Below, piece by piece: positions 12,525-31,045 of a stretch of 64,000 nt of DNA. Made by a program: the position numbers and the translations under genes. Where the stretch lies: IMG/VR virus record IMGVR_UViG_3300037882_001770, positions 248,001-312,000 of that record; one strand, given 5' to 3'. Position 1 is the first letter of the stretch, and each line of letters opens with the position of its first letter. The notes beneath the pieces were generated by a model. It was not told the origin of the DNA, ran no database searches, and was given only the letters and a program-made list of their open reading frames with translations.

Positions 12525-13274
12525 ATGCGCACTATTGTAATATATCCAGGAAGATTTCACCCATTTCACCGAGGCCACAAGGCCAGCTACGATTATCTTG
12601 TTCAGCAATTTGGTGCGGGCAATGTGTTTATTGCAACTAGCGATGTGCAGGCTCCTGTTACCAGTCCGTTCAGCTACAGCGACAAGGTAACTATGATGTC
12701 TAAGTTAGGCGTACCCTCGGGCAGAATAGCGCGAGTCAAAAGCCCGTACCAGGCCACAGAAATTACCGGGCAAATTGATGACAAAGAGCACACTGCCTTA
12801 ATATTTGCTGTCAGTGAAAAGGACATGCAAGGCGACACAGCTAGATTTAAATTTGGCACAAAAAAGAATGGCGAGCCCAGTTACATGCAACCCATGCCAG
12901 TGGCTGGTAAATTGCAACCAATGTCAAAACATGCGTATGTGATGATCACACCCACAGTCAATTTCAAAGTCAAAGGTGCCGACGCCAACAGTGCCAGTCA
13001 AATAAGAAAATTATATCTAGACGGAAACGACGCGGACCGCGATCAAATCATTGCAGATTTGTACGGAGAAGTTGAGCCACACATTCGAGATATATTTGAT
13101 CAGCGGTTGGCAGTGACACAAAATACACAAAATTTAGTTGCAGAAGCAAGAATTAAAAATCCTGGTCGTGCTGTAGCATTGTTAGAAGCCATATCAAGGT
13201 TGGAAAAAACAGCCAATTATATCGAATTTGAAGACCTTAGTTTAGACTACATCAACGAAAAACTCAGCCGCTAA
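12525..13274 (+). CDS. HxGH nucleotidyltransferase (cytidylyl/NMN adenylyltransferase-like)
   Basis: YPGRFHPFHRGH and C-terminal SASQIR; TAAATA 5 nt upstream. Confidence 0.75.
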   Translation: MRTIVIYPGRFHPFHRGHKASYDYLVQQFGAGNVFIATSDVQAPVTSPFSYSDKVTMMSKLGVPSGRIARVKSPYQATEITGQIDDKEHTALIFAVSEKDMQGDTARFKFGTKKNGEPSYMQPMPVAGKLQPMSKHAYVMITPTVNFKVKGADANSASQIRKLYLDGNDADRDQIIADLYGEVEPHIRDIFDQRLAVTQNTQNLVAEARIKNPGRAVALLEAISRLEKTANYIEFEDLSLDYINEKLSR

Positions 13275-14200: not shown

Positions 14201-14217
14201 CGGTAAATACAGTTCAT

Positions 14218-17200
14218 ATGAATATTAATGAACTGGATTCTTTTCGTCTTTCTGATGCTGTAAAGTTTAATGATACATTAAACCCACGTCTGTGGGACAA
14301 GCAAGAAAAATTAAAGCCCGAAATCCGAAATCGTCTGTTGGAAATAGCCGACGATTTTCGTGAGTTTTTAGGCGTTACTAATTTACAACTCAAAGACATT
14401 ACAATATCAGGCTCTAATGCAGCCTATACCTACACCCCACACAGCGACATTGACCTGCACTTAGTGGTGGACCTGCCCGAAGCAGATCAAAACGAAGTGT
14501 ACCGTGAATTGTTTGACGCTAAAAAATATCAATACAATGATATGCACAATATCAAACTTGGTGGGCACGATGTAGAATTGTATGTTGAAAATGCCAACAA
14601 AAAACCAGTTAGTCAAGGCATATACAGTGTCTTGAACAACGAGTGGGTTGATATTCCGCAACGTAAAAAAGCCAATGTTGACGACATTAGCACTCGCAAC
14701 AAATACAATGATTTGAGTCAGCGCATTGATTCTGCTATTCGCAGTGGCGATCAAGAACAGATAGAAACACTCAGCAGCAAAATCAAAGAAATGCGTCAGA
14801 CTGGACTAGATCAGCACGGTGAATTTGGTCCAGAGAATTTGGCATTTAAAATGTTGCGTACTCAAGGCAAAATCAAAGAGCTATACGATGCTCGCAATGC
14901 GGCCAAAGACGAATTGTTGAGCTTGGATGAACGCAAAAAGAAACGCAAAAAGAAAGTTCGTTACGGATACGGCGGTTACTGGTATCCAGGCACAGCCTAT
15001 GCCGGTCAAGATCATTCAGCCGGAACCGAAGGTGGTGGTGGAGACGGTGGTGGTGGTGGTGAAAGCATCAGAGAATCTGCGGAAACCACCGACGAAGAAA
15101 TTCTTAAAGACTTTGTTGACTTTTGTGTCAAAGAATTAAAAATAGAAAATTTACCAATTATTAAATTACGACGTGATCCGCAATGGCCGGTGGTGCACAA
15201 AACCTTTGGGCGTTATAACGATGACAAAGAAATGCTGGAAGTGGCATTCGGTCAACGACACATTATGGATGTGCTTCGCACAGTGGCGCATGAGCTTACC
15301 CATCGGCATCAACACGAGCGTGAAGACGTTCCGGGTGATGCCGGTGAAACCGGCAGTCCTTACGAAAACGAAGCCAATGCCAGGGCCGGAGTACTCATGC
15401 GTGACTATGCCGGACTGCACCCAGAATATTTCAAAGTAGGACAAGCAGAAGAATCACACTGTGACGAAGTTGATGAAGGGCTCAAAGGTAAATTAGGTGC
15501 CATGGCTGCTGCGGCGTGTATCGCTGGCACCCCTGGATGTTCAACTACTGCTGGTGCTCTTAAAACTGCACAAGATGTTGGGCGCACTGCTCAGACTGTT
15601 AAGAACATGAGCCGTGCTGGTGTTCAAGATGAGCTTGGCCAAGAACTGCGTAATTTTCTTCGGGCCCAGGGCGGCGAACCTGGCAGTCAAAATCAAAGTA
15701 GATTGTACCAATTACAAAAGCGAGCCACACAAAAAGAATCAGCTAGTGGCTATATTCCCACAAAGAAACAAGCCAAAGATCCACGTTTCAGCATGGCACT
15801 TACACAGGATATCAAGCCTGGCCAACTGGGTAAAGAGGCAAACAAATTAAAATTAAAGACCGATCGTCAAGGCCATCCGCAAGTAGCTAGCCCCAATGGC
15901 TTGTTTGAAAAATTAAGTTTAGAATTAAACAAATTTAAAAAAGGTGAAACAGACGAAGACTATAGTCCAGACAATCCGCCCGGACCCGAGTTTAAGCCCA
16001 CTATGCCAGCAGGAACTCTGCGTGTAGATGTAAGCGATGTATATGATTGGTACAAATTAGGCCAACATATCAGCAACATGCAAGGCCTAGGCAAACATGA
16101 TTTTGGTCAAGGTCCTCCTGGTGCTATTGTTAGTTTTGGTGACGAAGATACCGAACATAAATTTATCCAAGATCTTGAAGCCACTGGGTTGGATATCACA
16201 GACATTGATCCTGCAGATCCAAAACAACCTGCTGGGATGCGCACCATCAAAACAGATCCTACATACAAGGTAGATGAAGTAATACAAGCTCCTGTAAACA
16301 AATATAAAGATGATAAACAGTATTATAATTTCATTATGGCCAAACATAAACTAGGCCGCCCATTAACACGTCAAGAACAAGAATATGTAAGAAGCTACAA
16401 AATGTTTAATCAACAAGTTGCAGAATCTGTTGACCAACTAGACGAAGTGGCCATGAGCCCCAGTGCCTTGGCCAAGTGGGCTCAAAGTCCAGAAGCCGAA
16501 GGCATACGTGCTGGTTTTGAAGCCGAACTGATCTTTCGCGATACTACCAATGACGACGATGATGATACCGAAATGGAGCCCGACTATGATTATGACGAAC
16601 GGCCTCGCAGTATATCGGATGTCATAGACTTTTTTAATGGTGGCGACTACGGTGGCCTGAGTGATAGACAAGAAGGTCGATTACAAGACGGTCTAGATCA
16701 ACAGTACATGGAGTGGCAAGACGAACGCATGTATGACGCCTGGCGTGACGAACGTGAAGACTTGATCCGTGAAGCCTGGTTGCGTGAAAAGCCCATGGTT
16801 GAACGTGTTCACGACTATCTAGTAGAAGGCATGGACATGGACGATCGAGAAGCTGATCGCATTCAAGCAGCCGGCGACGCGGCCCCACGCTTTACCAAAT
16901 TGAGTGACCAAGAGGCTTACAAACAAGCCAACCCAGATTACGCAACTTATTTGGAAGCCGATGAAGGCGCCGAAGAAATCCTACAAGAAGAAGTTGAGCA
17001 GACCATTGAGAAAGAAGATGGCTTCTACGACGAAGTCCTGGATGAATTCCGCGAGAATTTTTATACTGACGATGACTCTAGCTTCTTTCAGGATGTTGGG
17101 CTGGGTTACATGAGTGACATAGCGTCAGAATACAGCTTAGACTGGCCTTATCTGACTGGATCCGGCGGTGGCAACAACGGTGGACGTCGTGAGTGGGATG

Positions 17201-18855
17201 ATGTTGGCAACAGTTTACAAGATGCTATAGACATGCCGGTTCGAGTCAGCCAGGGCTATCACAGCATGCCACGCAAGGAAGGTCAATGGATTGTGGAACC
17301 TGACTCCAGTTTGAGTCCGGACGACAGAGAAGACTTTGGCTTGGAAATAGTAAGCCCACCCTTGCCCCTATTGACTGCACTGGAAAAACTGCAAGAAGTC
17401 ACCGACTGGGCCAACAATCCCTCAGAAGGCAATGCCTATACCAACAGCAGTACAGGCCTACACATGGGTGTCAGCGTGCCTTATAAAGGTGGCGATGTGG
17501 ACTACTTAAAACTGATCCTGTTCCTAGGTGACGAATATGTGTTGCAGAGTTTTGGACGTGAAGCTAATACATATACCAAATCAGCTATGAAAGCCTTCCG
17601 TGAAAACATTAGGTCAGGACGTGCTGATCCTGCAGGTGCCATGGCCCTGATGCGGAGCAACCTAATAGAGTTTGCCTATAGGGAAATACAAAAAGGTGTG
17701 GGTGGCGGCAAGTACACCAGTGCGCACATACAGGACGGCTATATTGAATTCCGTAGTGCTGGTGGTGACTGGTTGGCCGAGGAGTCAGCAGATCCCCAAA
17801 AGTTATCCAGTACCATGTTGCGCTATGCTAGAGCCATGCAGATAGCGGCCGACCCTAGTGCCGAACGTAGAGAGTTTGCCAAAAAGTTATACAAGATGGT
17901 GTCTCCCGAAGGTGATAGTCAACTAGCCCTGTTCAGTCAGTTTTCTGCAGGTGAGCTCACAGCAGAACAACTCAAGAAAAAGTGGGCTGAAAAGACCATT
18001 GGCACAGAAAAGAAAGCAAATCAACGCTGGAAGCTGTATCAAATGGCCGACGGCGGATGGCAACCGGTGTCAGGTGCTGAATGGAACGGCTACACTGAAG
18101 AGCAGGTCAAGAATGCTGTATGGAGCAAGTACGGGCGTGAAGCACTAGATTCCGGTGAATACAAGTTGGTCAACATGGGCGAGCAGGAGTGGGAAGTATA
18201 CCGTGTTGACACAGGTGAAACTCTCGAAGTGGTCAAAGGCAAGAGTCGAGGCGAAGTGGCTGATTCAGTGTATGACAAGTACGCAACCCAAAAGATTGGA
18301 TTCAATGTGCGTCCATATCAAGATCCTGCCACCATGACTCCAAGAGCCAAGTTGGCCAAGCGTATTGCAACCAAGAAACCAGAACCAAAACAAGTAGCCA
18401 ACCAAGCAACCAACGAGCGTGGCGTTCCTTATTGGGAAGTATATGACATTAGCAACGACCAGATTGTGATCCATACATTCCTAAGTGATACCGCAGCCGA
18501 CGCCAAAGTAGATGGAGCAAATTGGCTGAAAAGTTTTGGTGCTACACACCCCGAGTTGTTTGCAGTAAGACCCAAGATAAAAACCGCACAGGTCAAAGAT
18601 GTAGAACCTAATGTGGCACAGAACTTTGACAGTGCTCGAGACAGTGCCACCCTGCAGACCAACTTGCAAGGCAGGTCATCGCCGGATGCAACTGAAGTCC
18701 CTCGCAACTGGGAATTCGTAAATCGTATAAACGGTCAAGTTATTCATAATATGACAAATGCCAGCTATAACCAGGCCAATGTAGTGCAAGATAATCTTGA
18801 ACTTAGATATCCAGATGCAGACATATATTTGCGTAGTGTAGAGAGATCAAATTAA
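14218..18855 (+). CDS. Large polyvalent protein: Pol-beta nucleotidyltransferase + zincin metallopeptidase + amidoligase + repeated C-terminal modules
   Basis: ISGSNA...SDIDLHL (GS/DxD); VAHELTHRHQ...ENEANA; GFEAEL, EPDSSL, EIVSPP, STGLHMGVS, IEFRS. Confidence 0.75.
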   Translation: MNINELDSFRLSDAVKFNDTLNPRLWDKQEKLKPEIRNRLLEIADDFREFLGVTNLQLKDITISGSNAAYTYTPHSDIDLHLVVDLPEADQNEVYRELFDAKKYQYNDMHNIKLGGHDVELYVENANKKPVSQGIYSVLNNEWVDIPQRKKANVDDISTRNKYNDLSQRIDSAIRSGDQEQIETLSSKIKEMRQTGLDQHGEFGPENLAFKMLRTQGKIKELYDARNAAKDELLSLDERKKKRKKKVRYGYGGYWYPGTAYAGQDHSAGTEGGGGDGGGGGESIRESAETTDEEILKDFVDFCVKELKIENLPIIKLRRDPQWPVVHKTFGRYNDDKEMLEVAFGQRHIMDVLRTVAHELTHRHQHEREDVPGDAGETGSPYENEANARAGVLMRDYAGLHPEYFKVGQAEESHCDEVDEGLKGKLGAMAAAACIAGTPGCSTTAGALKTAQDVGRTAQTVKNMSRAGVQDELGQELRNFLRAQGGEPGSQNQSRLYQLQKRATQKESASGYIPTKKQAKDPRFSMALTQDIKPGQLGKEANKLKLKTDRQGHPQVASPNGLFEKLSLELNKFKKGETDEDYSPDNPPGPEFKPTMPAGTLRVDVSDVYDWYKLGQHISNMQGLGKHDFGQGPPGAIVSFGDEDTEHKFIQDLEATGLDITDIDPADPKQPAGMRTIKTDPTYKVDEVIQAPVNKYKDDKQYYNFIMAKHKLGRPLTRQEQEYVRSYKMFNQQVAESVDQLDEVAMSPSALAKWAQSPEAEGIRAGFEAELIFRDTTNDDDDDTEMEPDYDYDERPRSISDVIDFFNGGDYGGLSDRQEGRLQDGLDQQYMEWQDERMYDAWRDEREDLIREAWLREKPMVERVHDYLVEGMDMDDREADRIQAAGDAAPRFTKLSDQEAYKQANPDYATYLEADEGAEEILQEEVEQTIEKEDGFYDEVLDEFRENFYTDDDSSFFQDVGLGYMSDIASEYSLDWPYLTGSGGGNNGGRREWDDVGNSLQDAIDMPVRVSQGYHSMPRKEGQWIVEPDSSLSPDDREDFGLEIVSPPLPLLTALEKLQEVTDWANNPSEGNAYTNSSTGLHMGVSVPYKGGDVDYLKLILFLGDEYVLQSFGREANTYTKSAMKAFRENIRSGRADPAGAMALMRSNLIEFAYREIQKGVGGGKYTSAHIQDGYIEFRSAGGDWLAEESADPQKLSSTMLRYARAMQIAADPSAERREFAKKLYKMVSPEGDSQLALFSQFSAGELTAEQLKKKWAEKTIGTEKKANQRWKLYQMADGGWQPVSGAEWNGYTEEQVKNAVWSKYGREALDSGEYKLVNMGEQEWEVYRVDTGETLEVVKGKSRGEVADSVYDKYATQKIGFNVRPYQDPATMTPRAKLAKRIATKKPEPKQVANQATNERGVPYWEVYDISNDQIVIHTFLSDTAADAKVDGANWLKSFGATHPELFAVRPKIKTAQVKDVEPNVAQNFDSARDSATLQTNLQGRSSPDATEVPRNWEFVNRINGQVIHNMTNASYNQANVVQDNLELRYPDADIYLRSVERSN

Positions 18856-19436
18856 TGAGAGCACAAGAATTCCTTGCTGAAAACAAGCAAGCCACTGCAA
18901 AACAAGTGTTGGCCTATATCAACCAAACACACCACGAGCCCATGACCGCAAAGTTGACCACGGCTGTGCGGGCACACCCACAGTGGGAACTGCGTCAGGT
19001 TTCATTACAGAATCTCAACATACCTGATCAGGACTACGAAGATCCAGAACAAGAGCCCGAGAGTGACCCTTACGGTCGTGTTATGGCAGTTGATCCAGAT
19101 CATGCCAACGAATACAGCACTCGGGTAGTAGATCGACACCCTATAGTGATTGATGATCAAGGCTATATTATAGATGGTAATCACCGAGCTTGGGCCGCCG
19201 CAGAACTGTTAAATCGTGATTCTATATCAGCATGGGTGCCGGTTAAACAAGATATGACGGAAAACTTTGCTGATGGCAAGGTCAAAGGCAAAAGTCGTCC
19301 AGGGCGTGTAAAACGTAGTGGAGCTAGTTGCAACGGAAGCGTAACAGATCTACGAGCTCGTGCTAAACGTGCAAGTGGCGAAAAGGCCAAAATGTATCAT
19401 TGGTGTGCCAACATGAAATCAGGAAAGAAAAAATGA
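18855..19436 (+). CDS. ParB/Srx-like domain plus basic Cys module; CTS-like N-terminus
   Basis: MRAQEFLAE; PIVID...IIDGNHRAWAA; C-terminal ENFADGK...HWCANMKSGKK. Confidence 0.7.
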   Translation: MRAQEFLAENKQATAKQVLAYINQTHHEPMTAKLTTAVRAHPQWELRQVSLQNLNIPDQDYEDPEQEPESDPYGRVMAVDPDHANEYSTRVVDRHPIVIDDQGYIIDGNHRAWAAAELLNRDSISAWVPVKQDMTENFADGKVKGKSRPGRVKRSGASCNGSVTDLRARAKRASGEKAKMYHWCANMKSGKKK

Positions 19437-20863
19437 GATCAGATGAATTTATTTCAGAAAATTTAAAGAAGTGGTTCAAAGAAAAATGGGTGCGATTTGG
19501 CCCCGACGGCAAGATCCGTGGTGACTGTGCTAGAGGAAGCAGCGGCGAAGGAAAACCTAAATGTTTGCCACAATCAAAAGCACAGGCCTTGGGTAAAAAG
19601 GGTCGTGCTTCGGCCGCGGCCAAGAAGCGTAGGGAAGATCCTAACCCAGAGCGTCGTGGGCCAGCCAAGAATGTGGCCACCAAGGTTCGTGAGGATGCAG
19701 ACCAATGGGAATTACGCATTGTGGATCAGTGGGAAGACGACGATCCTGAAAGCTATGGCAAAATGGATGAGTATGAATTTGATGTGTTACACAATGGTCA
19801 AAGCGTAGGACGTGCTCGTGCTAACAATTATTTCGCCAATTTGTATGTGGACCTAGACAACGGCAAACACATTGAACTTACTCATCAAAAACATGAAAAT
19901 CATCCATTGATGAAGGAATACGAGCGTCTTGTCTGGGGCCTAGACGAAGGGCAAGACCTGGATGAAGCCTGCTGGAAAGGTTATCACAAAGAAGGTATGA
20001 AAACCATGTTTGGCAAACGCTACCCTAACTGTGTTAAAAACAAAAATGAAAGTTTAGAAGTGTACGTCAATCGTGGAGAATGCCCAGGTTGTGGCGGAAG
20101 CATGGTTGCCGAAGATCAAATTACAGAAAAACAAGATGCTTGTTATCACAAAGTAAAATCAAGATACAAAGTATGGCCCAGTGCTTATGCATCTGGTGCA
20201 CTGGTTCAATGTCGTAAAAAAGGTGCTAGTAACTGGGGCAACAGTAGCAAAAACGAAAGTGATGAACAAGAGCTAGATGAAAAATGGAGTCAAAAATACA
20301 AGAGTAGCATTAACTGTGCTGACCCCAAAGGTTTCAGCCAGAAAGCTCATTGTGCAGGTAAAAACGAAAGTGTGGAGAATATGATGGATGAACTAGATAG
20401 AATTTTAGAATTAAGTACAGGAATAAGTGCCGGCGAACGAGCCGAATTAAATGAAGAGTTTGATTTGATTGAATCAATTATTGACACCCTGGCCGATCGC
20501 AATGGTGTAGATGCAGAAGCAATTTGGGAAGACCTAGAAAGTCTTGATGATGATGAACTGTATGTATTTGCAGTTACCCAGGACCCTATCATGGAAGATT
20601 GGCAAAAAGCCAACAAGAAAGACAAGACAGCCGGAATGAGTCGTAAAGCGGTCAAGGCTTATCGTCGTGAAAATCCAGGTAGCAAACTACAAACCGCTGT
20701 TACCACTAAACCTAGCAAGTTAAAAAAGGGCAGTAAGGCCAGCAAGCGTCGCAAAAGCTACTGTTCTCGATCAAAAGGTCAAATGAACATGCACAATATC
20801 AGCTGTGCCAAGACTCCAGACAAAGCTATCTGCAAGGCGCGCCGTCGCTGGAACTGTGAATGA
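19433..20863 (+). CDS. Modular protein of short basic Cys-containing units; CTS-like N-terminus
   Basis: Likely start MRSDEFISE at 19433; Lys/Arg/Cys-rich units separated by acidic xxE linkers. Confidence 0.7.
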   Translation: MRSDEFISENLKKWFKEKWVRFGPDGKIRGDCARGSSGEGKPKCLPQSKAQALGKKGRASAAAKKRREDPNPERRGPAKNVATKVREDADQWELRIVDQWEDDDPESYGKMDEYEFDVLHNGQSVGRARANNYFANLYVDLDNGKHIELTHQKHENHPLMKEYERLVWGLDEGQDLDEACWKGYHKEGMKTMFGKRYPNCVKNKNESLEVYVNRGECPGCGGSMVAEDQITEKQDACYHKVKSRYKVWPSAYASGALVQCRKKGASNWGNSSKNESDEQELDEKWSQKYKSSINCADPKGFSQKAHCAGKNESVENMMDELDRILELSTGISAGERAELNEEFDLIESIIDTLADRNGVDAEAIWEDLESLDDDELYVFAVTQDPIMEDWQKANKKDKTAGMSRKAVKAYRRENPGSKLQTAVTTKPSKLKKGSKASKRRKSYCSRSKGQMNMHNISCAKTPDKAICKARRRWNCE

Positions 20864-21207
20864 GATTTAGCGAATTTGTTGCTGAACAATATCAGTCTCG
20901 TCCGGCTACATTTGCGGACGGAACACTGAGAATGAGCAAACACTTACAAGATCGTAGTGTGCAACGAGATATTCCTATGGCAAGTATAATGAAAGTTTTG
21001 CAGAAACTTGAAGCAGTACGTGGCAAAGATCTAGCAGCATTGCCGCCAACATCATTTATTGTTAAAACTCCTGAAAATTTTGAATTAGCTATTATCAAAA
21101 CTCAAAGCCTAACTACTAACAAAGTAGAATATATAGTAGCTACAGTTCGTCAACAACTAAGACCCGGAGCCGGACAACGAATTATATACCTGGAACAGCA
21201 ACAATGA
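20860..21207 (+). CDS. Hypothetical protein with CTS-like N-terminus
   Basis: MRFSEFVAE; SKHLQDRSVQRDI segment. Confidence 0.65.
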   Translation: MRFSEFVAEQYQSRPATFADGTLRMSKHLQDRSVQRDIPMASIMKVLQKLEAVRGKDLAALPPTSFIVKTPENFELAIIKTQSLTTNKVEYIVATVRQQLRPGAGQRIIYLEQQQ

Positions 21208-22148
21208 GAGCTCAAGAATTTTTATTAGAATATAGAGAGCCTAAAAGTAAACGTGCTCATCGTGGTGGAATAGATCTAGAAGCCTGGCAGGATGGCCTGC
21301 ACTTTCAAATCAATGCCACCAGCCACGGTCGTGAGCTGGGTCGTGTGGCGTTTGATGTTCAATTCCAAGGCAAAGATACAATTCTAGTAGCACAAGATTT
21401 AATGATACACCCAGAATATCGTGGACAAGGTATTGCCGCCGTCATGTATGATTATGCCAAAGAACTGGGCCATGTGGTTGAACGTAGTCCTGAGCAAACG
21501 GATGCCGGCAAACAATTCTGGGACAAGAATCGCGGCGAGGAAGGTCGTGTATGGGAGTCTGAGTTAGATGAAATAGCCCGCATACCGCAAGGTGACTTTG
21601 GCACACCTGGCACCATAGTTCCTCCTGGACCCGAAGTTGAGCGTAAGGAATTGCCCGGCGGGTCTGGACTAACCTACGGCGTAAACAAAGAAAACGATCT
21701 AATAGAAATTATGGTGTTTGATGGTGAGGATCTTGCAGGCGAACTTGACATAGTGTACACTCGCGGTCCAATGAAGACCTGGGCGGTGGATTCGGTTGCT
21801 GTGGAACCCAAGTATCGCGGTCGTGGTATTGCCAAGGCCCTGTACGGCATTGCACTCAGCATACTTAAACTACCGATCGAAGCTGGTCAAATACAAACTA
21901 GCTACGGTCAAAAAATGTGGCTCATGTTAAATAGTATACCCGGAGTTGAAATAGTAGGCGTAGCACAAGATCCAACCAAAGACTATCAACCCAGACCAGG
22001 AGATAACATTGTGCGGCAAAATGCAACATATACAACCTATACATTTCCAGTATCAGCCGGTCAATCCAGCATGCGCAGCCGTAGACCTGGTACAGGCATG
22101 TATACCAGACCCGATACCACAATGGTAGCAAGGTGGACAGGATCATGA
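21204..22148 (+). CDS. Tandem GNAT acetyltransferase with CTS-like N-terminus
   Basis: MRAQEFLLE; IHPEYRGQGIA and VEPKYRGRGIA acetyl-CoA motifs. Confidence 0.8.
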   Translation: MRAQEFLLEYREPKSKRAHRGGIDLEAWQDGLHFQINATSHGRELGRVAFDVQFQGKDTILVAQDLMIHPEYRGQGIAAVMYDYAKELGHVVERSPEQTDAGKQFWDKNRGEEGRVWESELDEIARIPQGDFGTPGTIVPPGPEVERKELPGGSGLTYGVNKENDLIEIMVFDGEDLAGELDIVYTRGPMKTWAVDSVAVEPKYRGRGIAKALYGIALSILKLPIEAGQIQTSYGQKMWLMLNSIPGVEIVGVAQDPTKDYQPRPGDNIVRQNATYTTYTFPVSAGQSSMRSRRPGTGMYTRPDTTMVARWTGS

Positions 22149-22354
22149 AAGCAAAAGAAATCTACGCAACATCAAAAAAACAAGCTACACAGTACAAACT
22201 TTGGGGAGCCAGTGTGTCTATCAAGCAGCCCAATTATGTTGGACGAATTGATGTTACAGTAACAGCCCCCAATGCTCAACAGGCTCGAGTACTAATGAAA
22301 GCTCAGTACGGTGTACAGGACTGGCAAGTAGGCAGTGTTCGAGAGATAAAATAA
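22145..22354 (+). CDS. Hypothetical protein
   Basis: MKAKEIYA..., ATGA overlap. Confidence 0.6.
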   Translation: MKAKEIYATSKKQATQYKLWGASVSIKQPNYVGRIDVTVTAPNAQQARVLMKAQYGVQDWQVGSVREIK

Positions 22355-22419
22355 GGGCTAGTGAGTTAACCGCAACTCCTACCTACATTCCCATGAAATA
22401 ATACACAGCTAAATACAGC

Positions 22420-22716
22420 ATGAATCGTAAATTTGTGCGTGTGTTAGCAGATGTATATTGTGACTGGGAAGGCCTGGCGCCCAACTATCGCGTTTACGTC
22501 AACGATGAATTATTTGCTGAACGCACATGGGTATGGACCAACGAATATTTAGAGGAAATGTTGCAGATTGAAGCACCAGTCGGTGAGTACAATATACGTT
22601 ACGAACTAGTTCCTCCACATTTGGCACATATCGAGGTAAAAAAGATATTTGTTGATTTTGGTCCTGGAACCATGATTGATAACCATACATTAAAGGTACA
22701 TGATGAGAGCCAGTGA
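22420..22716 (+). CDS. Hypothetical protein
   Basis: 98 aa ORF, TAAATA 4 nt upstream. Confidence 0.65.
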   Translation: MNRKFVRVLADVYCDWEGLAPNYRVYVNDELFAERTWVWTNEYLEEMLQIEAPVGEYNIRYELVPPHLAHIEVKKIFVDFGPGTMIDNHTLKVHDESQ

Positions 22717-22906
22717 GTTTATAGCAGAAAATGCCAGCGCAGGCGGCACTAGTAGTGGTAGTATAGCCACAGTGGCTGCACCACTAGGCGGCACCATTAG
22801 TAGAAATGGCGGGAGTTTCTTTACAGGCGCTAAATACTCTAACGACGCCTGTCCTAATACCCCGGACTGGATGAAGAAACAAAAAGGAAAACGACGTGTT
22901 AAGTGA
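22703..22906 (+). CDS. Small protein with CTS-like N-terminus
   Basis: MRASEFIAE-NASAGGTSSGSIATV. Confidence 0.65.
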   Translation: MRASEFIAENASAGGTSSGSIATVAAPLGGTISRNGGSFFTGAKYSNDACPNTPDWMKKQKGKRRVK

Positions 22907-23336
22907 TTTACTAAAAACTTATTTGGCAAGCACATTTGCCTATTACTTAAAAGCCCATATGTTTCACTGGAACGTTGAAGGCCCAGATTTTGGCGAATTA
23001 CACAAGTTTTTATCTAAAATTTATGAAGATGCATTTGATGCCATTGATCCCATTGCTGAATATATCCGTACCACAGAAGAATACGCACCTGGAAGTTTTG
23101 AACGTTTCCAAGAACTAAGCCAAATATCAGGACAAACTAAAGTTCCCCGGGCCCGACTAATGCTAGAAGAATTACTCGCAGATACACAAACCATGATTGA
23201 CATGAGTCGACAAGTGTTTGAGGCCAGCGCAGCAGAAGGTCGCGAGGACATTGCAAATTTTGCAGCAGAACGACAAAGTCAGCATGGCAAATACATGTGG
23301 CAGATGAAGAGTTATTTGAAAGATGCTAGGGCATAA
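22896..23336 (+). CDS. dps: Dps-family ferritin-like protein
   Basis: KAHMFHWNVEGPDFGELHKFL, DPIAEYIR, HGKYMWQM. Confidence 0.9.
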   Translation: MLSDLLKTYLASTFAYYLKAHMFHWNVEGPDFGELHKFLSKIYEDAFDAIDPIAEYIRTTEEYAPGSFERFQELSQISGQTKVPRARLMLEELLADTQTMIDMSRQVFEASAAEGREDIANFAAERQSQHGKYMWQMKSYLKDARA

Positions 23337-23339
23337 GGT

Positions 23340-24032
23340 ATGAGCAATCACAACGATATCTACAGCATAGTTGAACGTCTTAGAATTCTTGAAGAAGGCC
23401 TTGATGCTGATCAAAAAAGTGTAAATCAGTTGAGCGCAACATTCAAACCCAAAACAGTAGCAGTGCTTACAGCCAAGACTGATCCTAAAAATCCACTTGG
23501 TGGTAAATTGGTTGGGTCAGAAGGGGTAGAAGATCACGAAGAAGTGGTCGAAGCTGTTGCCACCGAAGACATTTTAGACAAGGTAAAAAACAGTTTTCAT
23601 GACTATTTAAAAAGTATCGAAAATGAAATCAAAAGCGATCCAGATCTCAAAGACAAGATAACCGCAGACTCAGATCTCAAAGACAAAGAAAAAAACAACC
23701 GAGATCTAGTTGCCAAGAAATCTAAAAAAGAAATTGACGAAGATCCCACCGAAGAAGAGCCAGTTACTGCTGAGCCACCAGTGGTTACCTCTCAAGAACC
23801 TGTAAAGAATCCAACCTATGCTGAATCAGCGTGTGTTAAGAGTATTACCATGGAAGATGGCCGTATTTGCGAAATTCACGGAAACGAAAGTACAGGATTT
23901 GAGATCCGTCACGGCAATCGTATTATGCCAAGTCGGTTTAAACATATCGATGATGCTACTATGGCTTTAGAAATGTTTAAAAACCGTCGTCGTACACAGG
24001 ACGAATCACAAGATTACATAGACGAAGCTTAA
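23340..24032 (+). CDS. Hypothetical acidic late protein
   Basis: 230 aa ORF with xxE-rich linkers. Confidence 0.65.
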   Translation: MSNHNDIYSIVERLRILEEGLDADQKSVNQLSATFKPKTVAVLTAKTDPKNPLGGKLVGSEGVEDHEEVVEAVATEDILDKVKNSFHDYLKSIENEIKSDPDLKDKITADSDLKDKEKNNRDLVAKKSKKEIDEDPTEEEPVTAEPPVVTSQEPVKNPTYAESACVKSITMEDGRICEIHGNESTGFEIRHGNRIMPSRFKHIDDATMALEMFKNRRRTQDESQDYIDEA

Positions 24033-24047
24033 AGAGAGAAAATAAAA

Positions 24048-26435
24048 ATGTTTGCCTTAGACTTATTTAACACGGACCACGAACGTCGCTTAACTGAAGG
24101 TGCAGTAGATACTTTAGAACAACGTAGAATCGACGACCTAGCTATGAAAATGGACGACCTTGTAGCTCGTGCAAAAGAACCAGCATACAAAAAAAATCCT
24201 GCTGCATTGGCCGCATTAATGAAAGAATTTCAAAAGTGCAAAGATGAGCGTGACAGCTATTACAAGATACGCGAAGCCGTTTGCAGTGAATGTGGTATGA
24301 GCGAAGGACAATGTGGGCACACCAACGAAGCCGGAATTCCGGGCAATATTCCAGTAGAAAAGATTCCAGGCAAGGAAGATCTACTCAAAGGCAAAGGCCG
24401 TAGTTATTACGAAGGCGCCGAAGACTATGCTGAGATCTACAGTCCAGAAGCTATTGCACTAGGAAAAAAATTCTGCGAACACTACAATATCACCGACGAT
24501 ACTGATGTGCAATTGGCAGTAGAAATAATTGACAGCTATATTGACGAATTTAAAGCAACCAACACACCAATTGATTTAAAGAAGATACGCAGCGGAGTAG
24601 CTGATGCATTTCGTCAGGTATATCGTGGTATGGGGCCAGGCCCATCATTTCGTAAAAAGTTCCAAGAAGCTCAAAAAAAAAGTCCCGAAACTAACCCGTT
24701 AGACCAGAAACTACAACGACTCAAGACACAAGCACGTAGACAGTTTCCACGTGCTCACAGTGACGAAGAAGCATTGCTACTCAAACTTCTGGACAAAGAG
24801 ACACAAAACGATCTAGCTAATCGTCGTACAGATGCACGTCAGGATACTGACCTCAAACAAAACTTTGCGTTTGATCAAGAACAAGAAGATGAAATTCAGG
24901 ATCTCCAGGCACAGACCGGTATCAAAGAACACGGTGGCGGCATTGGTCCACGACAGCACTGGCAAGACCTCATGCAAGAGCGTAAATTGTCACCAGGCGA
25001 TCCTGTTGTAGTTACCGGTCCCAACAAGTTTGAAGGCAAGACTGGTGAAATTAGTGAATTCAGTCCAAGTGGTAAGTTTGTAGTAGTTAACTTGTACAAT
25101 CACGGTGAACACAGCATGCACCTAAGCGATGTTACTTATAATGAATATGCTGACCAAGATGAAGATGATTGGTACGACGAAGATCAAGTTGAAGAAGATC
25201 AGGGTGCAGGACAAGTGGCTGTAAAGGCCGCAGATGATGCTGTAGTCAATACCATGGGCGAAGGCTGGAGTGATGCTATGCTTGCTCGAAGAACAGGCCA
25301 ACCGCGTACACCTTATTCAGTTTATATCAAGGGCAAGAAGTGGAAAGACTTTGCTAACGATGATCATGCTCGAGCAGTCATGGATAAACTAAAAGCCAAA
25401 TTCAAAGCTGAAGGACGTGATCCAAGTGTCATTACTATTGCTCCTACCGATATGTCAGAAGAAGAACAAAAACCAGAATTTGGCCAGTTCCCTCCAAAGC
25501 AGGAAATTACAATTGTTCCTCCAAAGAAATTAAAGTCTGGTGAAACATATCAGGATCGAAACAAATATTGGCAGTCACAGGGTCAAGCACCTATCTACAA
25601 AACAAACGAAGACACCGATCAAGCTAAACGAGTATTCAAAGACAAAGCCGGACGACCTGTAGGTGAGATTGGTATCGACCCAGAATCAAGCCCGGGCAAT
25701 GGCGAGTGGTATGTACATCACTATGCCACAGGTTATAGCGTTGTCGGATTTGACTCGGCCGCTGAAGCCAAACGCGAACTAATGTATGTTCACAAGCATC
25801 CAGACTCAGTCGAAGGACATCCATCGACAACAGAGCAAGGTGTGGCGGAAGCTGGCACAGATTATTCTAAGCGTCGGCAACGTGAACGTGATGTTGATTC
25901 AGGCAAGCCTGTAGCTCGTCAGCGCCAACCTCGAATGACTGACTATCAACGGCGTCGTGCTCAAGACAAGAAGGACATGGAGTTAGGCGAGGCATCTGGC
26001 GGAAACTATGAACAAATGAATTATAGAAACAGCCCGACAGATCCTTATGTTGTTTACGACCGAACCATGAAGGCTGTTATCTTAACAACTGATTCACTAG
26101 AGCAGGCTAAACAAGAAGCTATCGAGTGGGCCGAATATGACGACATTGATGTGTCGGTGATCAGCCGTGCTACTAAAAAATCTATTTTCCGTGTAAACGG
26201 GTATGCCGGTGCAGAAAAATATCTCAACGAAGAGCAAGACACTTCGGGTGTAGAACGTGCTATTTTAAATCGTATCATGGTAGCGCACACAGACTTGTTG
26301 ATGAAGTTTGGTCCTGAAAAAGTCATGCAGGCCGCTGAAGAAGTTGCTTACAACGTAGGCGATGTTGACGAAATTGGCACTAGCGATGTCAGTGCTTATG
26401 TCAATCAAGTCAAACAAATTCTAGGAGTAGTGTAA
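24048..26435 (+). CDS. Large modular late protein (KOW-like and Cys-pair units)
   Basis: 795 aa; LSPGDPVVVTGPNKFEGKTG (KOW-like), CSECG, acidic xxE spacers. Confidence 0.6.
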   Translation: MFALDLFNTDHERRLTEGAVDTLEQRRIDDLAMKMDDLVARAKEPAYKKNPAALAALMKEFQKCKDERDSYYKIREAVCSECGMSEGQCGHTNEAGIPGNIPVEKIPGKEDLLKGKGRSYYEGAEDYAEIYSPEAIALGKKFCEHYNITDDTDVQLAVEIIDSYIDEFKATNTPIDLKKIRSGVADAFRQVYRGMGPGPSFRKKFQEAQKKSPETNPLDQKLQRLKTQARRQFPRAHSDEEALLLKLLDKETQNDLANRRTDARQDTDLKQNFAFDQEQEDEIQDLQAQTGIKEHGGGIGPRQHWQDLMQERKLSPGDPVVVTGPNKFEGKTGEISEFSPSGKFVVVNLYNHGEHSMHLSDVTYNEYADQDEDDWYDEDQVEEDQGAGQVAVKAADDAVVNTMGEGWSDAMLARRTGQPRTPYSVYIKGKKWKDFANDDHARAVMDKLKAKFKAEGRDPSVITIAPTDMSEEEQKPEFGQFPPKQEITIVPPKKLKSGETYQDRNKYWQSQGQAPIYKTNEDTDQAKRVFKDKAGRPVGEIGIDPESSPGNGEWYVHHYATGYSVVGFDSAAEAKRELMYVHKHPDSVEGHPSTTEQGVAEAGTDYSKRRQRERDVDSGKPVARQRQPRMTDYQRRRAQDKKDMELGEASGGNYEQMNYRNSPTDPYVVYDRTMKAVILTTDSLEQAKQEAIEWAEYDDIDVSVISRATKKSIFRVNGYAGAEKYLNEEQDTSGVERAILNRIMVAHTDLLMKFGPEKVMQAAEEVAYNVGDVDEIGTSDVSAYVNQVKQILGVV

Positions 26436-26436
26436 C

Positions 26437-26541
26437 ATGCCATTATATCGATTCAAACATCCTTCTGATAAGACCTGGATTGAAATTGTAGCCGAAACTT
26501 TTGCCGAGGCATTAACAAAGTTAAAAGAATTGGCTAGATGA
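26437..26541 (+). CDS. Small hypothetical protein (34 aa, missing from ORF track)
   Basis: AGGAG RBS; MPLYRFKHPSDKTWIEIVAETFAEALTKLKELAR; ATGA overlap. Confidence 0.55.
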   Translation: MPLYRFKHPSDKTWIEIVAETFAEALTKLKELAR

Positions 26542-27173
26542 AGATTAGTGATTTTCAAATTACTGACCACAACAAGTTAGACACCATTCTGGTACGTCTT
26601 TGCGAAATGGTTGTAGAAGGACAATACAAAAAGAAACTAAATCTTGGTGTGGTAGCAGCTGCGGTTTTGGATCCCAACAACAACTGTGTGGTGGGCATCA
26701 ACTATCCCACACAGGACGGACGTCGTGTGCATGGCGAACGTGCGGCTATTGACAGTTATGTAGCTCGGTTTGGAGAGATACCGCCAGGCAGCATTATCAT
26801 CACAACCTGTAGCCCTTGCACCCAATCCATGGACGAACGGTTTGGCATCAATTGTAGTGATCTAGTAGATCAAGTGGGTGTGCATAAAGTGTATGCCGGC
26901 TACAAAGATCCCACACAGGATTTTGATAATAAACGATATCACATTGAAATTACCCGTAATAAAAAGATACAGGCCTTATGTAAGGCATTTGCCGACACCT
27001 TTTTGGAAGAATCATTAAATGAATTGAGTTTTTTAGGCAGTCCTTGCACTAAAGACTGCTCAGGACATCGTGCTGGTTATGCTTGGAGCCAAAGCAAAGG
27101 CGGTGTAGCAGGAAACAGTCCATTTAGTCCCAGCTTCAATAATGGTGCCAACCTGTTTGTAGCTGGTAAGTAG
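26538..27173 (+). CDS. Zn-dependent deaminase-fold protein with a C-terminal Cys module
   Basis: VHGERAAI (HxE) and TCSPC...C; second unit after LNE (CTKDCSGHRAGY). Confidence 0.75.
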   Translation: MKISDFQITDHNKLDTILVRLCEMVVEGQYKKKLNLGVVAAAVLDPNNNCVVGINYPTQDGRRVHGERAAIDSYVARFGEIPPGSIIITTCSPCTQSMDERFGINCSDLVDQVGVHKVYAGYKDPTQDFDNKRYHIEITRNKKIQALCKAFADTFLEESLNELSFLGSPCTKDCSGHRAGYAWSQSKGGVAGNSPFSPSFNNGANLFVAGK

Positions 27174-27992: not shown

Positions 27993-28020
27993 TTGACTTT
28001 CTTATTTTATACTGTATAAT
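27993..28020 (+). promoter_or_regulatory. Sigma70-like promoter
   Basis: TTGACT-N16-TATAAT. Confidence 0.6.
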
Positions 28021-28387: not shown

Positions 28388-31045
28388 ATGAGTTATATTG
28401 ACGCACTTTTTGATCGTGAACACGATCGCATACATGTAGTTGAACGGCGAGATGGCAAGAGATGCTATCAGGAATATCCGGCCAACTACATTTTTTATTA
28501 CGAAGATCCCCGTGGCAAATTTCAAAGCATTTTTGGAACATCAGTCAGCAGATTCAGCACACGCAACAACAAAGAGTTTCGTAAAGAAATTCGCATACAG
28601 TCGGGCAAGAAATTATTTGAATCCGACATTAATCCTGTATTCCGCTGTCTTGAGGACAACTACAAAGGACAAGACGGTCCCAAGTTAAATGTAGCGTTCT
28701 TTGACATTGAGGTCGACTTTGACCCCGAACGTGGCTTTAGTCCAACAACAGATCCATTCAATGCTATCACTGCTATTTCAGTTTATCTGCAGTGGCTAGA
28801 GCAGATGGTCACTCTTGTTGTACCTCCAAAGCATATGAGTCGAGCTACTGCGGATGAAATTGCTCGAGAGTTTGAAAACTGCATTGTGTTTGAGCGAGAA
28901 GAAGAAATGTTAAAAACTTTCTTGGATCTTATCGAAGACGCCGATGCACTTTCAGGCTGGAATAGTGAAGGGTATGATATACCCTACACAATTAATCGTG
29001 TTACCCGTGTTCTGAGCAAAGATGACACCCGTAGATTTTGTTTATGGAACCAATATCCTAAAAAACGCATGTTTGAACGCTTTGGCGCAGAGAATGAAAC
29101 CTATGACTTAATTGGCCGCGTGCATATGGACTATATGCAACTGTATCGCAAATACACCTACGAAGAGCGTCATAGTTATAGTTTGGATGCTATTGCTGAA
29201 TACGAACTCCAAGAAACCAAGACTGTGTTTGAAGGCACCCTGGATCAACTGTACAACCAAAACTTCAAAAAGTTTATTGAATACAACAGGCAAGATACAA
29301 TGATTCTGGCCAAGCTAGATAAGAAATTAAAATTCTTAGACCTAGCGAACACACTGGCGCATGAAAACACTGTATTGCTACAAACTACCATGGGTGCTGT
29401 GGCTGTAACTGAGCAGGCCATTATCAATGAGGCACACGAACGTGGTATGGTTGTGCCCAATCGCAAGGAACGCTACAGTGATGAGGACACCCAGGCCGCC
29501 GGAGCTTATGTTGCCTTTCCAAAGAAAGGCATCCACGAATATGTAGGCTCGATAGACATCAATTCATTGTATCCCAGTGCCATTCGTGCGCTTAACATGG
29601 GACCCGAGACTATTGTGGGACAACTAAGACCCATAATGACCGAACGTTACATCAGCGACAAGATGCGTGGTGGGGCCAGCTTTGCAGCGGCGTGGGAAGG
29701 CTTGTTTGGCAGTTTAGAATATGAAGCGGTCATGGCCGCCGAGCCCGGTACAGAGATCACCATAGACTGGCAAGATGGTGAGGAGTCGGTCCATAGTGCG
29801 GCCGAAGTATGGAAGATAATTTTTGATAGTAACCACCCCTGGATGATCACTGCCAATGGCACTATCTTTACCTATGAAAAAGAAGCAGTTATTCCTGGCT
29901 TGCTAAAACGTTGGTATGCCGAACGTAAAGAGATGCAGGCCAAACTTAAAGAGTGTAAAAATGCGGAAGATGAAGAATATTGGGACAAGCGTCAACTTGT
30001 TAAAAAGATTAACCTCAACAGTCTCTATGGTGCTATTCTTAATCCTGGTTGCCGTTTCTTTGATAAGCGTATTGGTCAGTCCACAACTCTTACTGGTCGT
30101 GCCATTGCCCGGCACATGGATGCTTATGTAAACGAGTGTATCACAGGCAAATATGATCATGTAGGTGAGTCAATCATCTATGGTGACACTGATTCCTGCT
30201 ATTTTACAGCCTATCCGATTTTACAAAAAGAGATAGAAGCCGGTAACATGACATGGAATCGAGAAATTGCCGTACAACTGTATAATAGCATTTCTGATCA
30301 AGTTAACGATAGCTTTCCGGGCTTTATGGAGCAGGCATTCCATGTTCCACGCGAGATGGGCAATGTGATCAAAGGCGGTCGAGAGATTGTGGCCAGCAAA
30401 GGCTTGTTCATTACCAAAAAACGTTACGCTGTCATGTATTATGACAAAGAAAACAAGCGTGTGGACACACACGGTAGCCCGGGCAAGGTCAAAGCCATGG
30501 GTCTTGATCTCAAACGCAGTGATACTCCTAAGGTCATTCAAGAATTTCTAAGCGAAATCTTAAACGAGGTACTAGTGGGTGCCACACGTGAAAGTATTAT
30601 TGAAAAGATTCGCGAGTTCAAATACAAGTTCAAAGAGCGTCCAGGTTGGGAAAAAGGCAGCCCCAAGCGTGTAAATAATTTAACCAAGTATGGCAAGGAA
30701 GAAGAACGTCTAGGCAAAGCCAACATGCCGGGCCATGTCCGTGCAGCACTCAACTGGAACAATCTACGTAGAATGAATAGCGACAAGTACAGCATGCAGA
30801 TTGTCGACGGCATGAAAACTATTGTGTGTAAGTTAAAAGCTAATCCACTAGGTTGGACCAGCATAGGTTACCCCACTGATGAACAACATTTACCTCAATG
30901 GTTCAAAGAACTGCCGTTTGATGACAGTGAAATGGAAGCCACAGTAGTGGATCAAAAGATCAATAATCTGTTGGGAGTGCTGGAGTGGGATCTAGCAAGT
31001 GCCACCAACACAGAAAACACATTCCAAACCTTGTTTGAGTGGTAA
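28388..31045 (+). CDS. polB: Family B DNA polymerase (T4 gp43-like)
   Basis: Exo FDIE, GWNSEGYD, YNRQD; polymerase DINSLYPS, KINLNSLYG, YGDTDS. Confidence 0.97.
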   Translation: MSYIDALFDREHDRIHVVERRDGKRCYQEYPANYIFYYEDPRGKFQSIFGTSVSRFSTRNNKEFRKEIRIQSGKKLFESDINPVFRCLEDNYKGQDGPKLNVAFFDIEVDFDPERGFSPTTDPFNAITAISVYLQWLEQMVTLVVPPKHMSRATADEIAREFENCIVFEREEEMLKTFLDLIEDADALSGWNSEGYDIPYTINRVTRVLSKDDTRRFCLWNQYPKKRMFERFGAENETYDLIGRVHMDYMQLYRKYTYEERHSYSLDAIAEYELQETKTVFEGTLDQLYNQNFKKFIEYNRQDTMILAKLDKKLKFLDLANTLAHENTVLLQTTMGAVAVTEQAIINEAHERGMVVPNRKERYSDEDTQAAGAYVAFPKKGIHEYVGSIDINSLYPSAIRALNMGPETIVGQLRPIMTERYISDKMRGGASFAAAWEGLFGSLEYEAVMAAEPGTEITIDWQDGEESVHSAAEVWKIIFDSNHPWMITANGTIFTYEKEAVIPGLLKRWYAERKEMQAKLKECKNAEDEEYWDKRQLVKKINLNSLYGAILNPGCRFFDKRIGQSTTLTGRAIARHMDAYVNECITGKYDHVGESIIYGDTDSCYFTAYPILQKEIEAGNMTWNREIAVQLYNSISDQVNDSFPGFMEQAFHVPREMGNVIKGGREIVASKGLFITKKRYAVMYYDKENKRVDTHGSPGKVKAMGLDLKRSDTPKVIQEFLSEILNEVLVGATRESIIEKIREFKYKFKERPGWEKGSPKRVNNLTKYGKEEERLGKANMPGHVRAALNWNNLRRMNSDKYSMQIVDGMKTIVCKLKANPLGWTSIGYPTDEQHLPQWFKELPFDDSEMEATVVDQKINNLLGVLEWDLASATNTENTFQTLFEW

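Follow-up and report, generated by a model that had tools for sequence, protein, structure and literature searches.

In phage T4, the internal proteins IPII and IPIII begin with a ten-residue capsid targeting sequence (Mullaney and Black 1996; reviewed in PMC9026906 and PMC3012670). This sequence, MKTYQEFIAE, has been defined experimentally (10.1101/2021.01.19.427310; PMC9026906), with residues 4 and 7 acting chiefly in targeting and residues 8 and 10 in processing (PMC9026906). A conserved tag carried by diverse, fast-evolving internal proteins is an established principle for the T-even phages (PMC3012670, PMC9026906). Here, we analyzed a stretch of 64,000 nucleotides (bases 248001-312000, referred to below as the window) of the single 317,493-bp virus record IMGVR_UViG_3300037882_001770, in which five open reading frames (ORFs) start with a nine-residue tag of consensus M-R-x-x-E-F-[ILV]-x-E. 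Reading from sequence, we consider it probable that this motif is a T4-type capsid-targeting propeptide, removed after Glu9 by the prohead protease, that loads a variable set of enzymes into the head, and we think the window likely to hold a hypervariable island of such tagged cargo genes.

Comparable delivery of proteins has been described or predicted elsewhere. T4 Alt is a packaged ADP-ribosyltransferase that is trimmed by gp21 and injected to modify host targets (PMC5512222, PMC9026906). The polyvalent proteins of phages and conjugative elements are predicted to be delivered with DNA (Iyer et al. 2017; PMC5512222). Giant phages of the phiKZ/SPN3US type carry head-internal ejection proteins that are cut after Glu by a gp21-related protease (PMC5694885), and the Dar system of phage P1 packages DdrB, a ParB-like protein, in the head as anti-restriction cargo (PMC5512222, PMC9024508).

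The system described here is closest to T4 IPII and IPIII. Both have a short N-terminal propeptide (EF[ILV]xE here, EFIAE in T4), a gp21-family protease, a hydrophobic-x-Glu at the cut of the capsid protein (a predicted cut here), and a tag on unrelated, fast-changing proteins. Unlike the T4 tag, the one in the window has nine residues rather than ten, Arg2 for Lys2, and mostly no aromatic residue at the Tyr4 position; eight genes are tagged in one genome, and the cargo is often enzymatic and multi-module, whereas T4's internal proteins are small and basic. The phage itself is an uncultured 317-kb freshwater jumbo phage, known here from sequence alone, with a capsid protein 37% identical to gp23. 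T4 Alt is the model for enzymatic cargo, although its propeptide differs from the IP-type tag and, unlike T4, this system has no confirmed ADP-ribosyltransferase domain among its proteins. Such an identity for a tagged 138-amino-acid (aa) protein of one relative (G002), considered for its YHAT motif, was dropped for want of a Pfam match.

With the polyvalent proteins, the system shares an overlapping repertoire (ParB/Srx, kinase-PolyVal, metallopeptidase motif, nucleotidyltransferase [NTase] and lysozyme), domains shuffled between single- and multi-domain forms, and predicted delivery with DNA. The differences are that polyvalent proteins are proposed to be processed by an embedded metallopeptidase, whereas here there are prohead-protease-type sites and an explicit N-terminal address tag, and that here mostly one- and two-domain cargos stand in an operon instead of in a single giant polypeptide. 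The phiKZ/SPN3US-type phages are alike in cutting after Glu with a gp21-related protease, and their paralogues share identical N-terminal stretches, but their propeptides mostly exceed 100 residues, their motif is A/S/G-x-E, and they are a different phage lineage. P1 DdrB, like one cargo here, is a ParB/Srx-type protein, in P1 carried in the capsid, but its loading pathway differs and has no T4-type tag; the likeness holds at the superfamily level.

An earlier note on this DNA, made from the letters alone, had named five ORF starts, their peptides, the unrelated domains behind them, and a resemblance to MKTYQEFIAE; coordinates and translations agree, and each of these observations held on inspection. 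Searching the window with the DNA pattern ATGAGR-N6-GARTTY-NTN-NNN-GAR gives 5 matches, versus 0.00 in dinucleotide-preserving shuffles. The peptide pattern M[RK]xx[ED]FxxE finds six matches in the six frames of the 317-kb genome, all six at ORF starts on the + strand. Under relaxed rules (a GTG start and a ten-residue variant), the genome has eight tagged members. The three outside the window lie between the tail tube and terminase genes, in the structural module, and a ten-residue form of the tag, M-K-x-F-x-[DE]-Y-L-x-E, is found on one conserved virion-module protein. The codons of the tag vary among copies (GAA/GAG, TTC/TTT, CTT/ATT/GTT/TTA/ATA); therefore, conservation acts at the protein level. 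Once the first 10 residues are removed, the five window proteins have no pairwise match at E<1e-3. As caveats, the ATG at 19433 lies inside a longer ORF with a possible TTG start at 19400, and the tagged gene at 22703 has a second ATG at 22700.

Two of the structural-module members (genome 113772-114529; L003:9772-10529) are small tandem tagged paralogues, one basic (isoelectric point [pI] 9.8) and one acidic (pI 4.3), with the shared ending ...FKGYPR. No other tagged proteins of the clade are as well conserved (at least 81 members among the matches listed), and the pair lies about 3.7 kb upstream of the gene for the large terminase subunit.

Read directly from the T4 record, ipII and ipIII both start with MKTYQEFIAE, and the spacing of aromatic, aliphatic and Glu residues is shared with our motif. 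The nine-residue tags retain the aromatic F6, the aliphatic [ILV]7 and E9 at T4 spacing, which is true of all eight members in their own form, and the ten-residue form retains all four critical T4 positions (F4, Y7, L8 and E10). The counterpart of T4 Tyr4 is mostly Ala3 in the nine-residue tags, Phe3 in one of the five window tags, and F4 in the ten-residue form.

The tag also resembles the site at which the capsid protein is matured. T4 gp23, with its propeptide of 65 residues (PMC9026906), carries FLTE at residues 62-65, where it is cut between FLTE65 and A. In the local capsid protein, YLKE41 precedes NASAGSTTSGNIATL, with the predicted site between YLKE41 and NASAG, and in that of phage PA5oct, FLVE precedes NASAGATQAGNIATI (FLVE, then NASAG). 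The local cut after Glu41 is predicted both by this homology and by an in-register copy in the smallest window cargo, a 67-aa protein in which Glu9 is followed by NASAGGTSSGSIAT (NASAGGTSSGSIATV), copying capsid protein residues 42-56 in the same register. When this protein is compared with the phage's own proteome, the best match is those capsid residues (12 of 15 identical, E 4e-5). The predicted cut of the tag and that of the capsid protein are therefore in register, which is the strongest internal evidence that one protease may handle both.

Small proteins of similar design may occur in T4 itself. T4 gene 61.1 (NC_000866 18966-19130, minus strand; L277:167-331) encodes 54 aa starting with MKTFKEFIKE, a start that belongs, per the annotation, to this gene, T4 IPI starting instead with MKTFKEFTSTTTPVSTITE. 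Behind it comes ...NISIGTTSGAVVNKGP, a stretch resembling the N-arm of mature T4 gp23 (NIAAGQTSGAVTQIGP), and the end of the protein is a Lys-rich tail. The gp61.1 and 22703 proteins thus share a design of tag, copy of the own capsid N-arm, and basic tail, while direct similarity between them is weak (phrog_17311 E 0.0022; pairwise E 0.012); they may represent a conserved, so far unrecognised class of small tagged head protein. Prochlorococcus phage Syn33 has, between gp16 and gp17, a gene (gene 106, L275:3628-3966; also L276:2495-4144) whose annotated product carries four residues ahead of the sequence MKSYNEFISE. This annotated start is probably wrong, and T4-type tags thus seem to be present in cyanomyoviruses too.

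The source belongs to the T4 superfamily and is an uncultured jumbo phage of fresh water, an assignment drawn from its capsid-protein relationships and from the presence of the window sequence in freshwater and lake metagenomes; by megablast, the region had no match among GenBank phages. The genome encodes T4-type machinery. A gp21-type protease, the enzyme that the earlier note proposed to look for elsewhere in the genome, is present as a Peptidase_S77 member (PF03420, T4 gp21 family; E 2e-25, over the Pfam cut-off) whose His, Ser and Asp columns are invariant in alignment with T4 gp21 and PA5oct. It stands in a head module of T4-like gene order (portal, small gp67-like protein, acidic protein, protease, scaffold and capsid protein), and a gp55-like late sigma factor is encoded as well. 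Candidates for the scaffold are a gp22-like protein (genome 78218-79327) and a gp68-like protein (genome 76754-77572). The major capsid protein belongs to the Gp23 family (E 9e-99), with 37% identity to T4 gp23 and 62-67% identity to the PA5oct-like and RaK2-like jumbo phages. A related capsid gene is found on >600 IMG/VR contigs, the best 80 of which are 79-94% identical.

Among relatives, the tag behaves as a unit that moves between proteins, as the motif scan proposed in the earlier note brought out. Strict tags number one to five in each of four large relatives (G001-G004), versus none for a reversed-pattern control, and relaxed rules give 25 tagged ORFs over these four genomes and this phage. 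The exact-pattern scan of IMG/VR found at least 158 sites at at least 120 loci; 157 of the 158 sites listed head ORFs of at least 50 aa, and 112 of the 120 loci listed carry other homologues of this phage's genes, the remaining loci being very short. Position 7 was I, L or V, though the scan pattern permitted F, L, I, M or V. Behind the tag, the cargo forms at least 33 single-linkage clusters among the matches listed, and conservation across cargo stops at Glu9. Other proteins headed by the tag in relatives are one with a LysM-lysozyme, one with ParB_N/DUF6886, one with DUF6267, and one that is kinase-like, with a weak Kinase-PolyVal match.

To follow retention, homologues were gathered by homology, without reference to the tag, and then checked for it. 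The tag was present on 100 of 120 ParB-family homologues (most of the rest being fragments) and on all four homologues of the 115-aa protein, and orthologues of the three structural-module tagged proteins retain it at 40-62% identity. Alignment of the 476-aa protein with the untagged gp127 of cyanophage ACG-2014f, which starts with MGNLHKWF, begins at residue 10 of the former, and a 68-aa protein at one locus (L260) consists of the tag followed directly by a basic tail module and nothing else. The tag is therefore a separable unit bounded by Glu. The island around the window genes is flanked by a conserved glycosyltransferase and the DNA polymerase. In two relatives (G001 and G002) its synteny persists but its content is shuffled, with only the Dps-like gene (50% identity) and pieces of a 1545-aa protein kept.

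One homologue of the 18855 protein (P0013) has a twin-arginine-like signal, TRRDFLRGAGALAGG (precomputed Pfam TAT_signal), right after the tag. This signal would become N-terminal on removal of the tag, which raises the question of cargo export in the newly infected cell.

The tagged array spans 18855-22906, narrower than the extent of 14218-27173 given for it in the earlier note; its genes are listed in Table 1 with the other features discussed.

Table 1. Tags, tagged genes and other features of the phage (positions refer to the window unless marked as genome positions; aa, amino acids; nt, nucleotides).
Feature	Position	Strand	Description
Tag MRAQEFLAE	18855..18881	+	ATG overlaps the stop of the preceding gene (TAATG)
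Tag MRSDEFISE	starts 19433	+	ATG overlaps the stop of the preceding gene as ATGA
Tag MRFSEFVAE	starts 20860	+	
Tag MRAQEFLLE	starts 21204	+	
Tag MRASEFIAE	starts 22703	+	
Tagged cargo 1	18855..19436	+	193 aa; ParB/Srx-like domain and basic, Cys-containing NFADG tail module
Tagged cargo 2	19433..20863	+	476 aa; multi-module basic protein, C-terminal DUF6321 (Pfam DUF6321, phrog_727)
Tagged cargo 3	20860..21207	+	115 aa; small alpha/beta domain
Tagged cargo 4	21204..22148	+	314 aa; two GNAT acetyltransferase domains
Tagged cargo 5	22703..22906	+	67 aa; tag, copy of predicted mature N-terminus of capsid protein, basic tail; phrog_17311 E 0.0022
Tagged gene, ten-residue form MKNFKDYLAE	genome 110110		202 aa
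Tagged gene, GTG start, MRAQEFLTE	genome 113772		124 aa
Tagged gene, MRAREFMVE	genome 114143		128 aa
Untagged polyvalent-like protein	14218..18855	+	1545 aa; NTase-like 1-238, K/G-rich 239-286, HExxH ~290-407, amidoligase ~1019-1087
ORF without family match	22420..22716	+	98 aa; overlaps start of last tagged gene
Ferritin/Dps-like gene	22896-23336		Untagged; E 2.4e-20
gp21-family prohead protease gene	genome 77581-78231		Peptidase_S77
TAAATA late-promoter-like hexamer	14204..14209	+	8 nt before ATG of the 14218 gene, first of the coupled operon
Second TAAATA hexamer	22410..22415	+	4 nt before ATG of the 98-aa ORF preceding the last tagged gene

Both enzyme families that the earlier note had read behind the tag were borne out. 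Cargo 1 has an invariant D107-G-N-H-R111 motif (DGNHR), a DGxHR-type active-site loop, and weak PHROG matches by hidden Markov model (E about 2e-3). Its AlphaFold2 model has a predicted local distance difference test score (pLDDT) of 81.5, and its best 19 Foldseek matches in PDB are all ParB, PadC, sulfiredoxin or SerK (best E 6.8e-3, probability 0.98). Together with the model, these matches support placing it in the ParB/Srx superfamily, NTPase/nuclease-like. The tag (residues 1-8) and the inter-module junction (134-143) are disordered in the model (pLDDT <50), which we count, as far as a model allows, in favor of the tag being accessible. The 314-aa cargo exceeds the Pfam cut-offs in two stretches for Acetyltransf_1 (44.7 bits versus 20.7), Acetyltransf_7 (44.6 versus 27) and Acetyltransf_CG, and has the acetyl-CoA loops (R/Q-x-x-G-x-G/A) YRGQGIAA and YRGRGIAK. 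Its first GNAT module is fused behind the ParB domain in the protein P0017.

The 115-aa cargo is possibly a RelE/RegB-like endoribonuclease, to judge from RegB_T4 at 20.3 bits (cut-off 27), DUF4258 at E 0.095, and weak PHROG endoribonuclease matches. Its model has low confidence (pLDDT 67.8), an alpha-alpha-beta4 arrangement, and non-significant best PDB matches to HigB2 and YoeB (E 0.2-0.6); an Atlas search adds only the recurrence of this domain among multidomain proteins of viruses. T4-like cyanophages often carry modules of the 476-aa cargo between gp16 and gp17. The 98-aa ORF before the last tagged gene had no family match in Pfam or PHROG.

The tail of cargo 1 (window 19263-19436) is a mobile C-terminal module of ~57 aa that is basic, usually has two Cys, and runs NFADGKVKGKSRPGRVK...MYHWCANMKSGKKK. 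It recurs in the clade (L260, L206, L160, P0124 and P0125) on ParB-like, GNAT and RNase-like cargos, also alone behind the tag, and two homologues of the 115-aa cargo carry it as an added tail. It may be a DNA-binding or ejection handle.

As to expression, TAAATA is the most enriched hexamer upstream of the phage's genes (69 of 405 genes, 10.5-fold). Most structural genes have it ahead of them, the portal gene and the tail genes among these, as do the 202-aa tagged gene and many others. TAAATA is the core of the T4 late promoter, TATAAATA. In the window, ATGA or TAATG overlaps link each gene from 14218 to 22148 to the next. Further on, an 87-aa gene and the family-B DNA polymerase (28388-31045) are preceded by a near-consensus sigma-70 promoter (TTGACT, 16 nt, TATAAT; window 27993-28020, + strand); the cargo island would therefore be a transcription unit apart from the replication genes. 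The PA5oct homologue of the 202-aa protein, gp282, is annotated as a virion protein by electrospray ionization tandem mass spectrometry (ESI-MS/MS).

The spacing of the hexamer falls into two classes. In about 27 genes, including those for the portal and gp67-like proteins and window 14218, 22420 and 12525, TAAATA stands 0-9 nt before the ATG; in other genes, which have a Shine-Dalgarno sequence, the distance is 17-30 nt. The window sites are at 11512, 12514, 14204 and 22410. If TAAATA is a promoter -10 element, the short-spaced class would yield leaderless or nearly leaderless late mRNAs.

On the reading that we prefer, tagged proteins would be made late in infection from tightly coupled operons, and the tag would bind the scaffolding core so that they are built into the prohead. 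The gp21-family protease would cut after the last Glu, at the same hydrophobic-x-Glu site that is used in maturation of the capsid protein. Mature cargo would stay in the head, exit with the DNA at the next infection, and act before any phage gene expression. The kinds of cargo (ParB/Srx, the LysM-lysozyme of a relative and the weak Kinase-PolyVal match) would by analogy fit known packaged effectors. We infer scaffold binding, cleavage, head retention, ejection and the anti-defence or host-takeover roles from sequence. The proposal of the earlier note, that a reusable tag loads a variable set of enzymes for injection, perhaps as anti-defence factors, is consistent with the protease, the shape of the tag, its modularity and retention, and the TAAATA context, while packaging, injection and anti-defence keep the standing of predictions.

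Several observations weigh against this reading. The phage is uncultured. Its nine-residue tag falls one residue short of that of T4 and mostly has no aromatic residue at the Tyr4 position. T4 gene 61.1, a hypothetical gene by the primase gene, has its tag-like start without being a recognised internal protein, so the motif by itself is no proof of internal-protein status. A general hydrophobic-hydrophobic-x-Glu near N-termini is not enriched in the genome (21 genes versus 11-23 in control windows), so only the specific tag counts. The five window genes adjoin replication genes, outside the structural module, and the label "late" rests on six bases, TAAATA, that also precede some non-structural genes. 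PA5oct gp282 starts with MKSFRDYYDA, which has no Glu. Finally, no nine-residue tag, or one chance-like match, turned up in each of the closest relatives in culture (PA5oct, Vibrio phage 2.275.O, Sinorhizobium phage Phosso, CBB and GAP32); therefore, published virion proteomes cannot check packaging by proxy.

Of the alternatives, the one that survives best accepts that the tag loads the head and holds that the cargo is mainly structural, consisting of DNA-condensing internal proteins or scaffold accessories rather than injected effectors. Five of the eight mature products are indeed basic (pI 8.6-10.4), and basic tails recur (the NFADG module and DUF6321). The best-conserved two of the tagged proteins are small, lack enzymatic character and adjoin the terminase, and T4 IPII and IPIII are themselves abundant, basic and without known target (PMC9026906). 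However, the array includes enzymes with intact motifs (R-G-x-G-I-A twice in the GNAT cargo, DGNHR in the ParB cargo, and the lysozyme in a relative), and the island is hypervariable among close relatives, as expected in an arms race and as for T-even internal proteins (PMC3012670). We regard a mainly structural role as unlikely.

A little less likely again is a protein-level address or control element with a non-capsid purpose, such as a site for a cytoplasmic protease or chaperone (timed activation or degron) or a handle for another assembly. The inferred status of packaging, the place of the window genes outside the structural module, the occurrence of the motif on gp61.1 amid T4 early genes, and the Tat-like signal directly after the tag in one homologue, which hints at other N-terminal uses, all leave it some room. 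But the motif equals the T4 tag with experimentally shown capsid targeting (PMC9026906) as well as the phage's own predicted capsid maturation site, with one cargo continuing with the mature capsid N-terminus in register. Moreover, three members stand among head and tail genes, and the tagged LysM-lysozyme of a relative fits a virion-borne enzyme.

The shared start could instead be a nucleotide-level expression element, in which ATGAGAGC... gives the upstream gene a built-in TGA stop and allows efficient re-initiation, so that new genes slot into coupled operons. The overlap of the tag's ATG with the upstream stop is common (49% as ATGA and 15% as TAATG, 64% together, among the IMG/VR matches listed); in the window, four of the five tagged genes are coupled by overlap, and several have no clear Shine-Dalgarno sequence. 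Yet coupling accounts for the first four bases only. Residues 5-9 (E-F-[ILV]-x-E) are retained despite synonymous codon changes, position 7 is narrower than the pattern allowed, one member has a GTG start without overlap, and orthologues at 40% identity retain the tag. Coupling and a protein tag can coexist, and an element acting at the nucleotide level alone appears improbable. The weakest alternative, diverged paralogues that kept an ancestral N-terminal helix and no transferable tag, could point to the tandem members with their common C-terminus ...FKGYPR, but it is very hard to reconcile with window proteins of different folds and families without pairwise similarity past residue 10, with a tag on at least 33 clusters, and with an untagged homologue that aligns from residue 10. 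On these grounds, neither paralogy nor pure translational coupling was accepted as a full explanation.

The capsid-targeting reading leaves the untagged neighbours largely aside. The earlier note had grouped with the array an amidoligase, a nucleotidyltransferase, a peptidase, a Dps protein and a deaminase. These are real as domains or motifs (the nucleotidyltransferase just under its cut-off, the peptidase as an HExxH motif), but all are untagged, and nothing was found that marks the Dps-like ferritin, the dCMP-deaminase-like protein (E 8e-9), or the 230-aa and 795-aa proteins as cargo. The sole neighbour that appears linked to the tag system, and then indirectly, is the 1545-aa protein, through its K/G-rich module. 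In Pfam, Amidoligase_2 is over the cut-off and NTP_transf_2 just under it, and phrog_36119 matches residues 15-233. Its HExxH motif, VAHELTHRHQHE, lies within a conserved 120-aa module that has no Pfam match at E<0.1, and Pfam searches on pieces of the protein and on the 230-aa and 795-aa neighbours gave only the weak NTase and the amidoligase. In G001 and G002, the NTase, HExxH and other modules each have a gene of their own. The K/G-rich module, here preceded by SLDE238 and ending in SIRE286, stands directly behind the tag in G002 and in a homologue (P0086). A cytidylyltransferase/NMNAT-like gene at window 12525-13274 is also untagged, and outside the window a single 4927-aa ORF (genome 37747-52530, minus strand) begins with MAKIRTVDFLPE.

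These module boundaries hint at a further, tentative idea, which we hold to be possible but rather doubtful: that loading follows a beads-on-a-string scheme in which each mobile module (ParB/Srx, GNAT, RelE-like, K/G-rich peptide, NFADG tail, NTase, HExxH and amidoligase) is preceded by a prohead-protease site, so that a tagged precursor would be cut into several free effectors in the capsid. Relatives have ParB-GNAT, ParB-ParB and RNase-like-plus-tail fusions. The NFADG tail begins right after the tag Glu in the 68-aa protein and after hydrophobic-x-E in seven of eight other contexts. The GNAT module is preceded by ...MTE in the fusion (...MTE, then YRE) and by the tag's ...LLE in the window gene. 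In the ParB-like window cargo, such a site would be MTE135, and the inter-module junction there is the one disordered in the AlphaFold2 model. The K/G-rich module follows FITE and runs to ...SMSE in G002, follows FIIE and runs to ...VKE in P0086, and follows SLDE and runs to ...IRE in the 1545-aa protein. In that protein, three of the five best-supported module boundaries lie at most 3 residues from a hydrophobic-x-Glu site, versus about 0.13 expected per boundary. Overall, 71 of 190 module junctions fall at protease-type sites versus 15.5 expected, a count dominated by one recurrent junction in redundant homologues, so the evidence is suggestive only. If true, this scheme would merge T4 capsid targeting with the polyvalent-protein idea, and the injected proteome of an uncultured clade would be readable from sequence.

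Among the papers in the library searched that mention the capsid targeting sequence, no title or abstract points to this clade. New here are the shorter form of the tag, the number of tagged cargos together with their enzymatic and modular character, the lineage of the phage, and the explicit link of a T4-type tag with polyvalent-type cargo. Head-carried proteins are the first phage proteins met by the host cell, and, provided that the tag acts as it does in T4, nine residues would suffice to list them for an abundant, uncultured clade of freshwater jumbo phages. The resulting catalogue comprises at least 33 cargo families, most without known function, that are possible counter-defence or host-takeover factors; it includes acetyltransferases, ParB/Srx enzymes, a lysozyme, kinase-like proteins and possible RNases. 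The T4 tag already serves to package foreign proteins (PMC3012670), and a second, shorter natural tag family could serve likewise. If our reading is true, the capsid-targeting principle of T4, known from T-even coliphages, would be old and widespread in the T4 superfamily.

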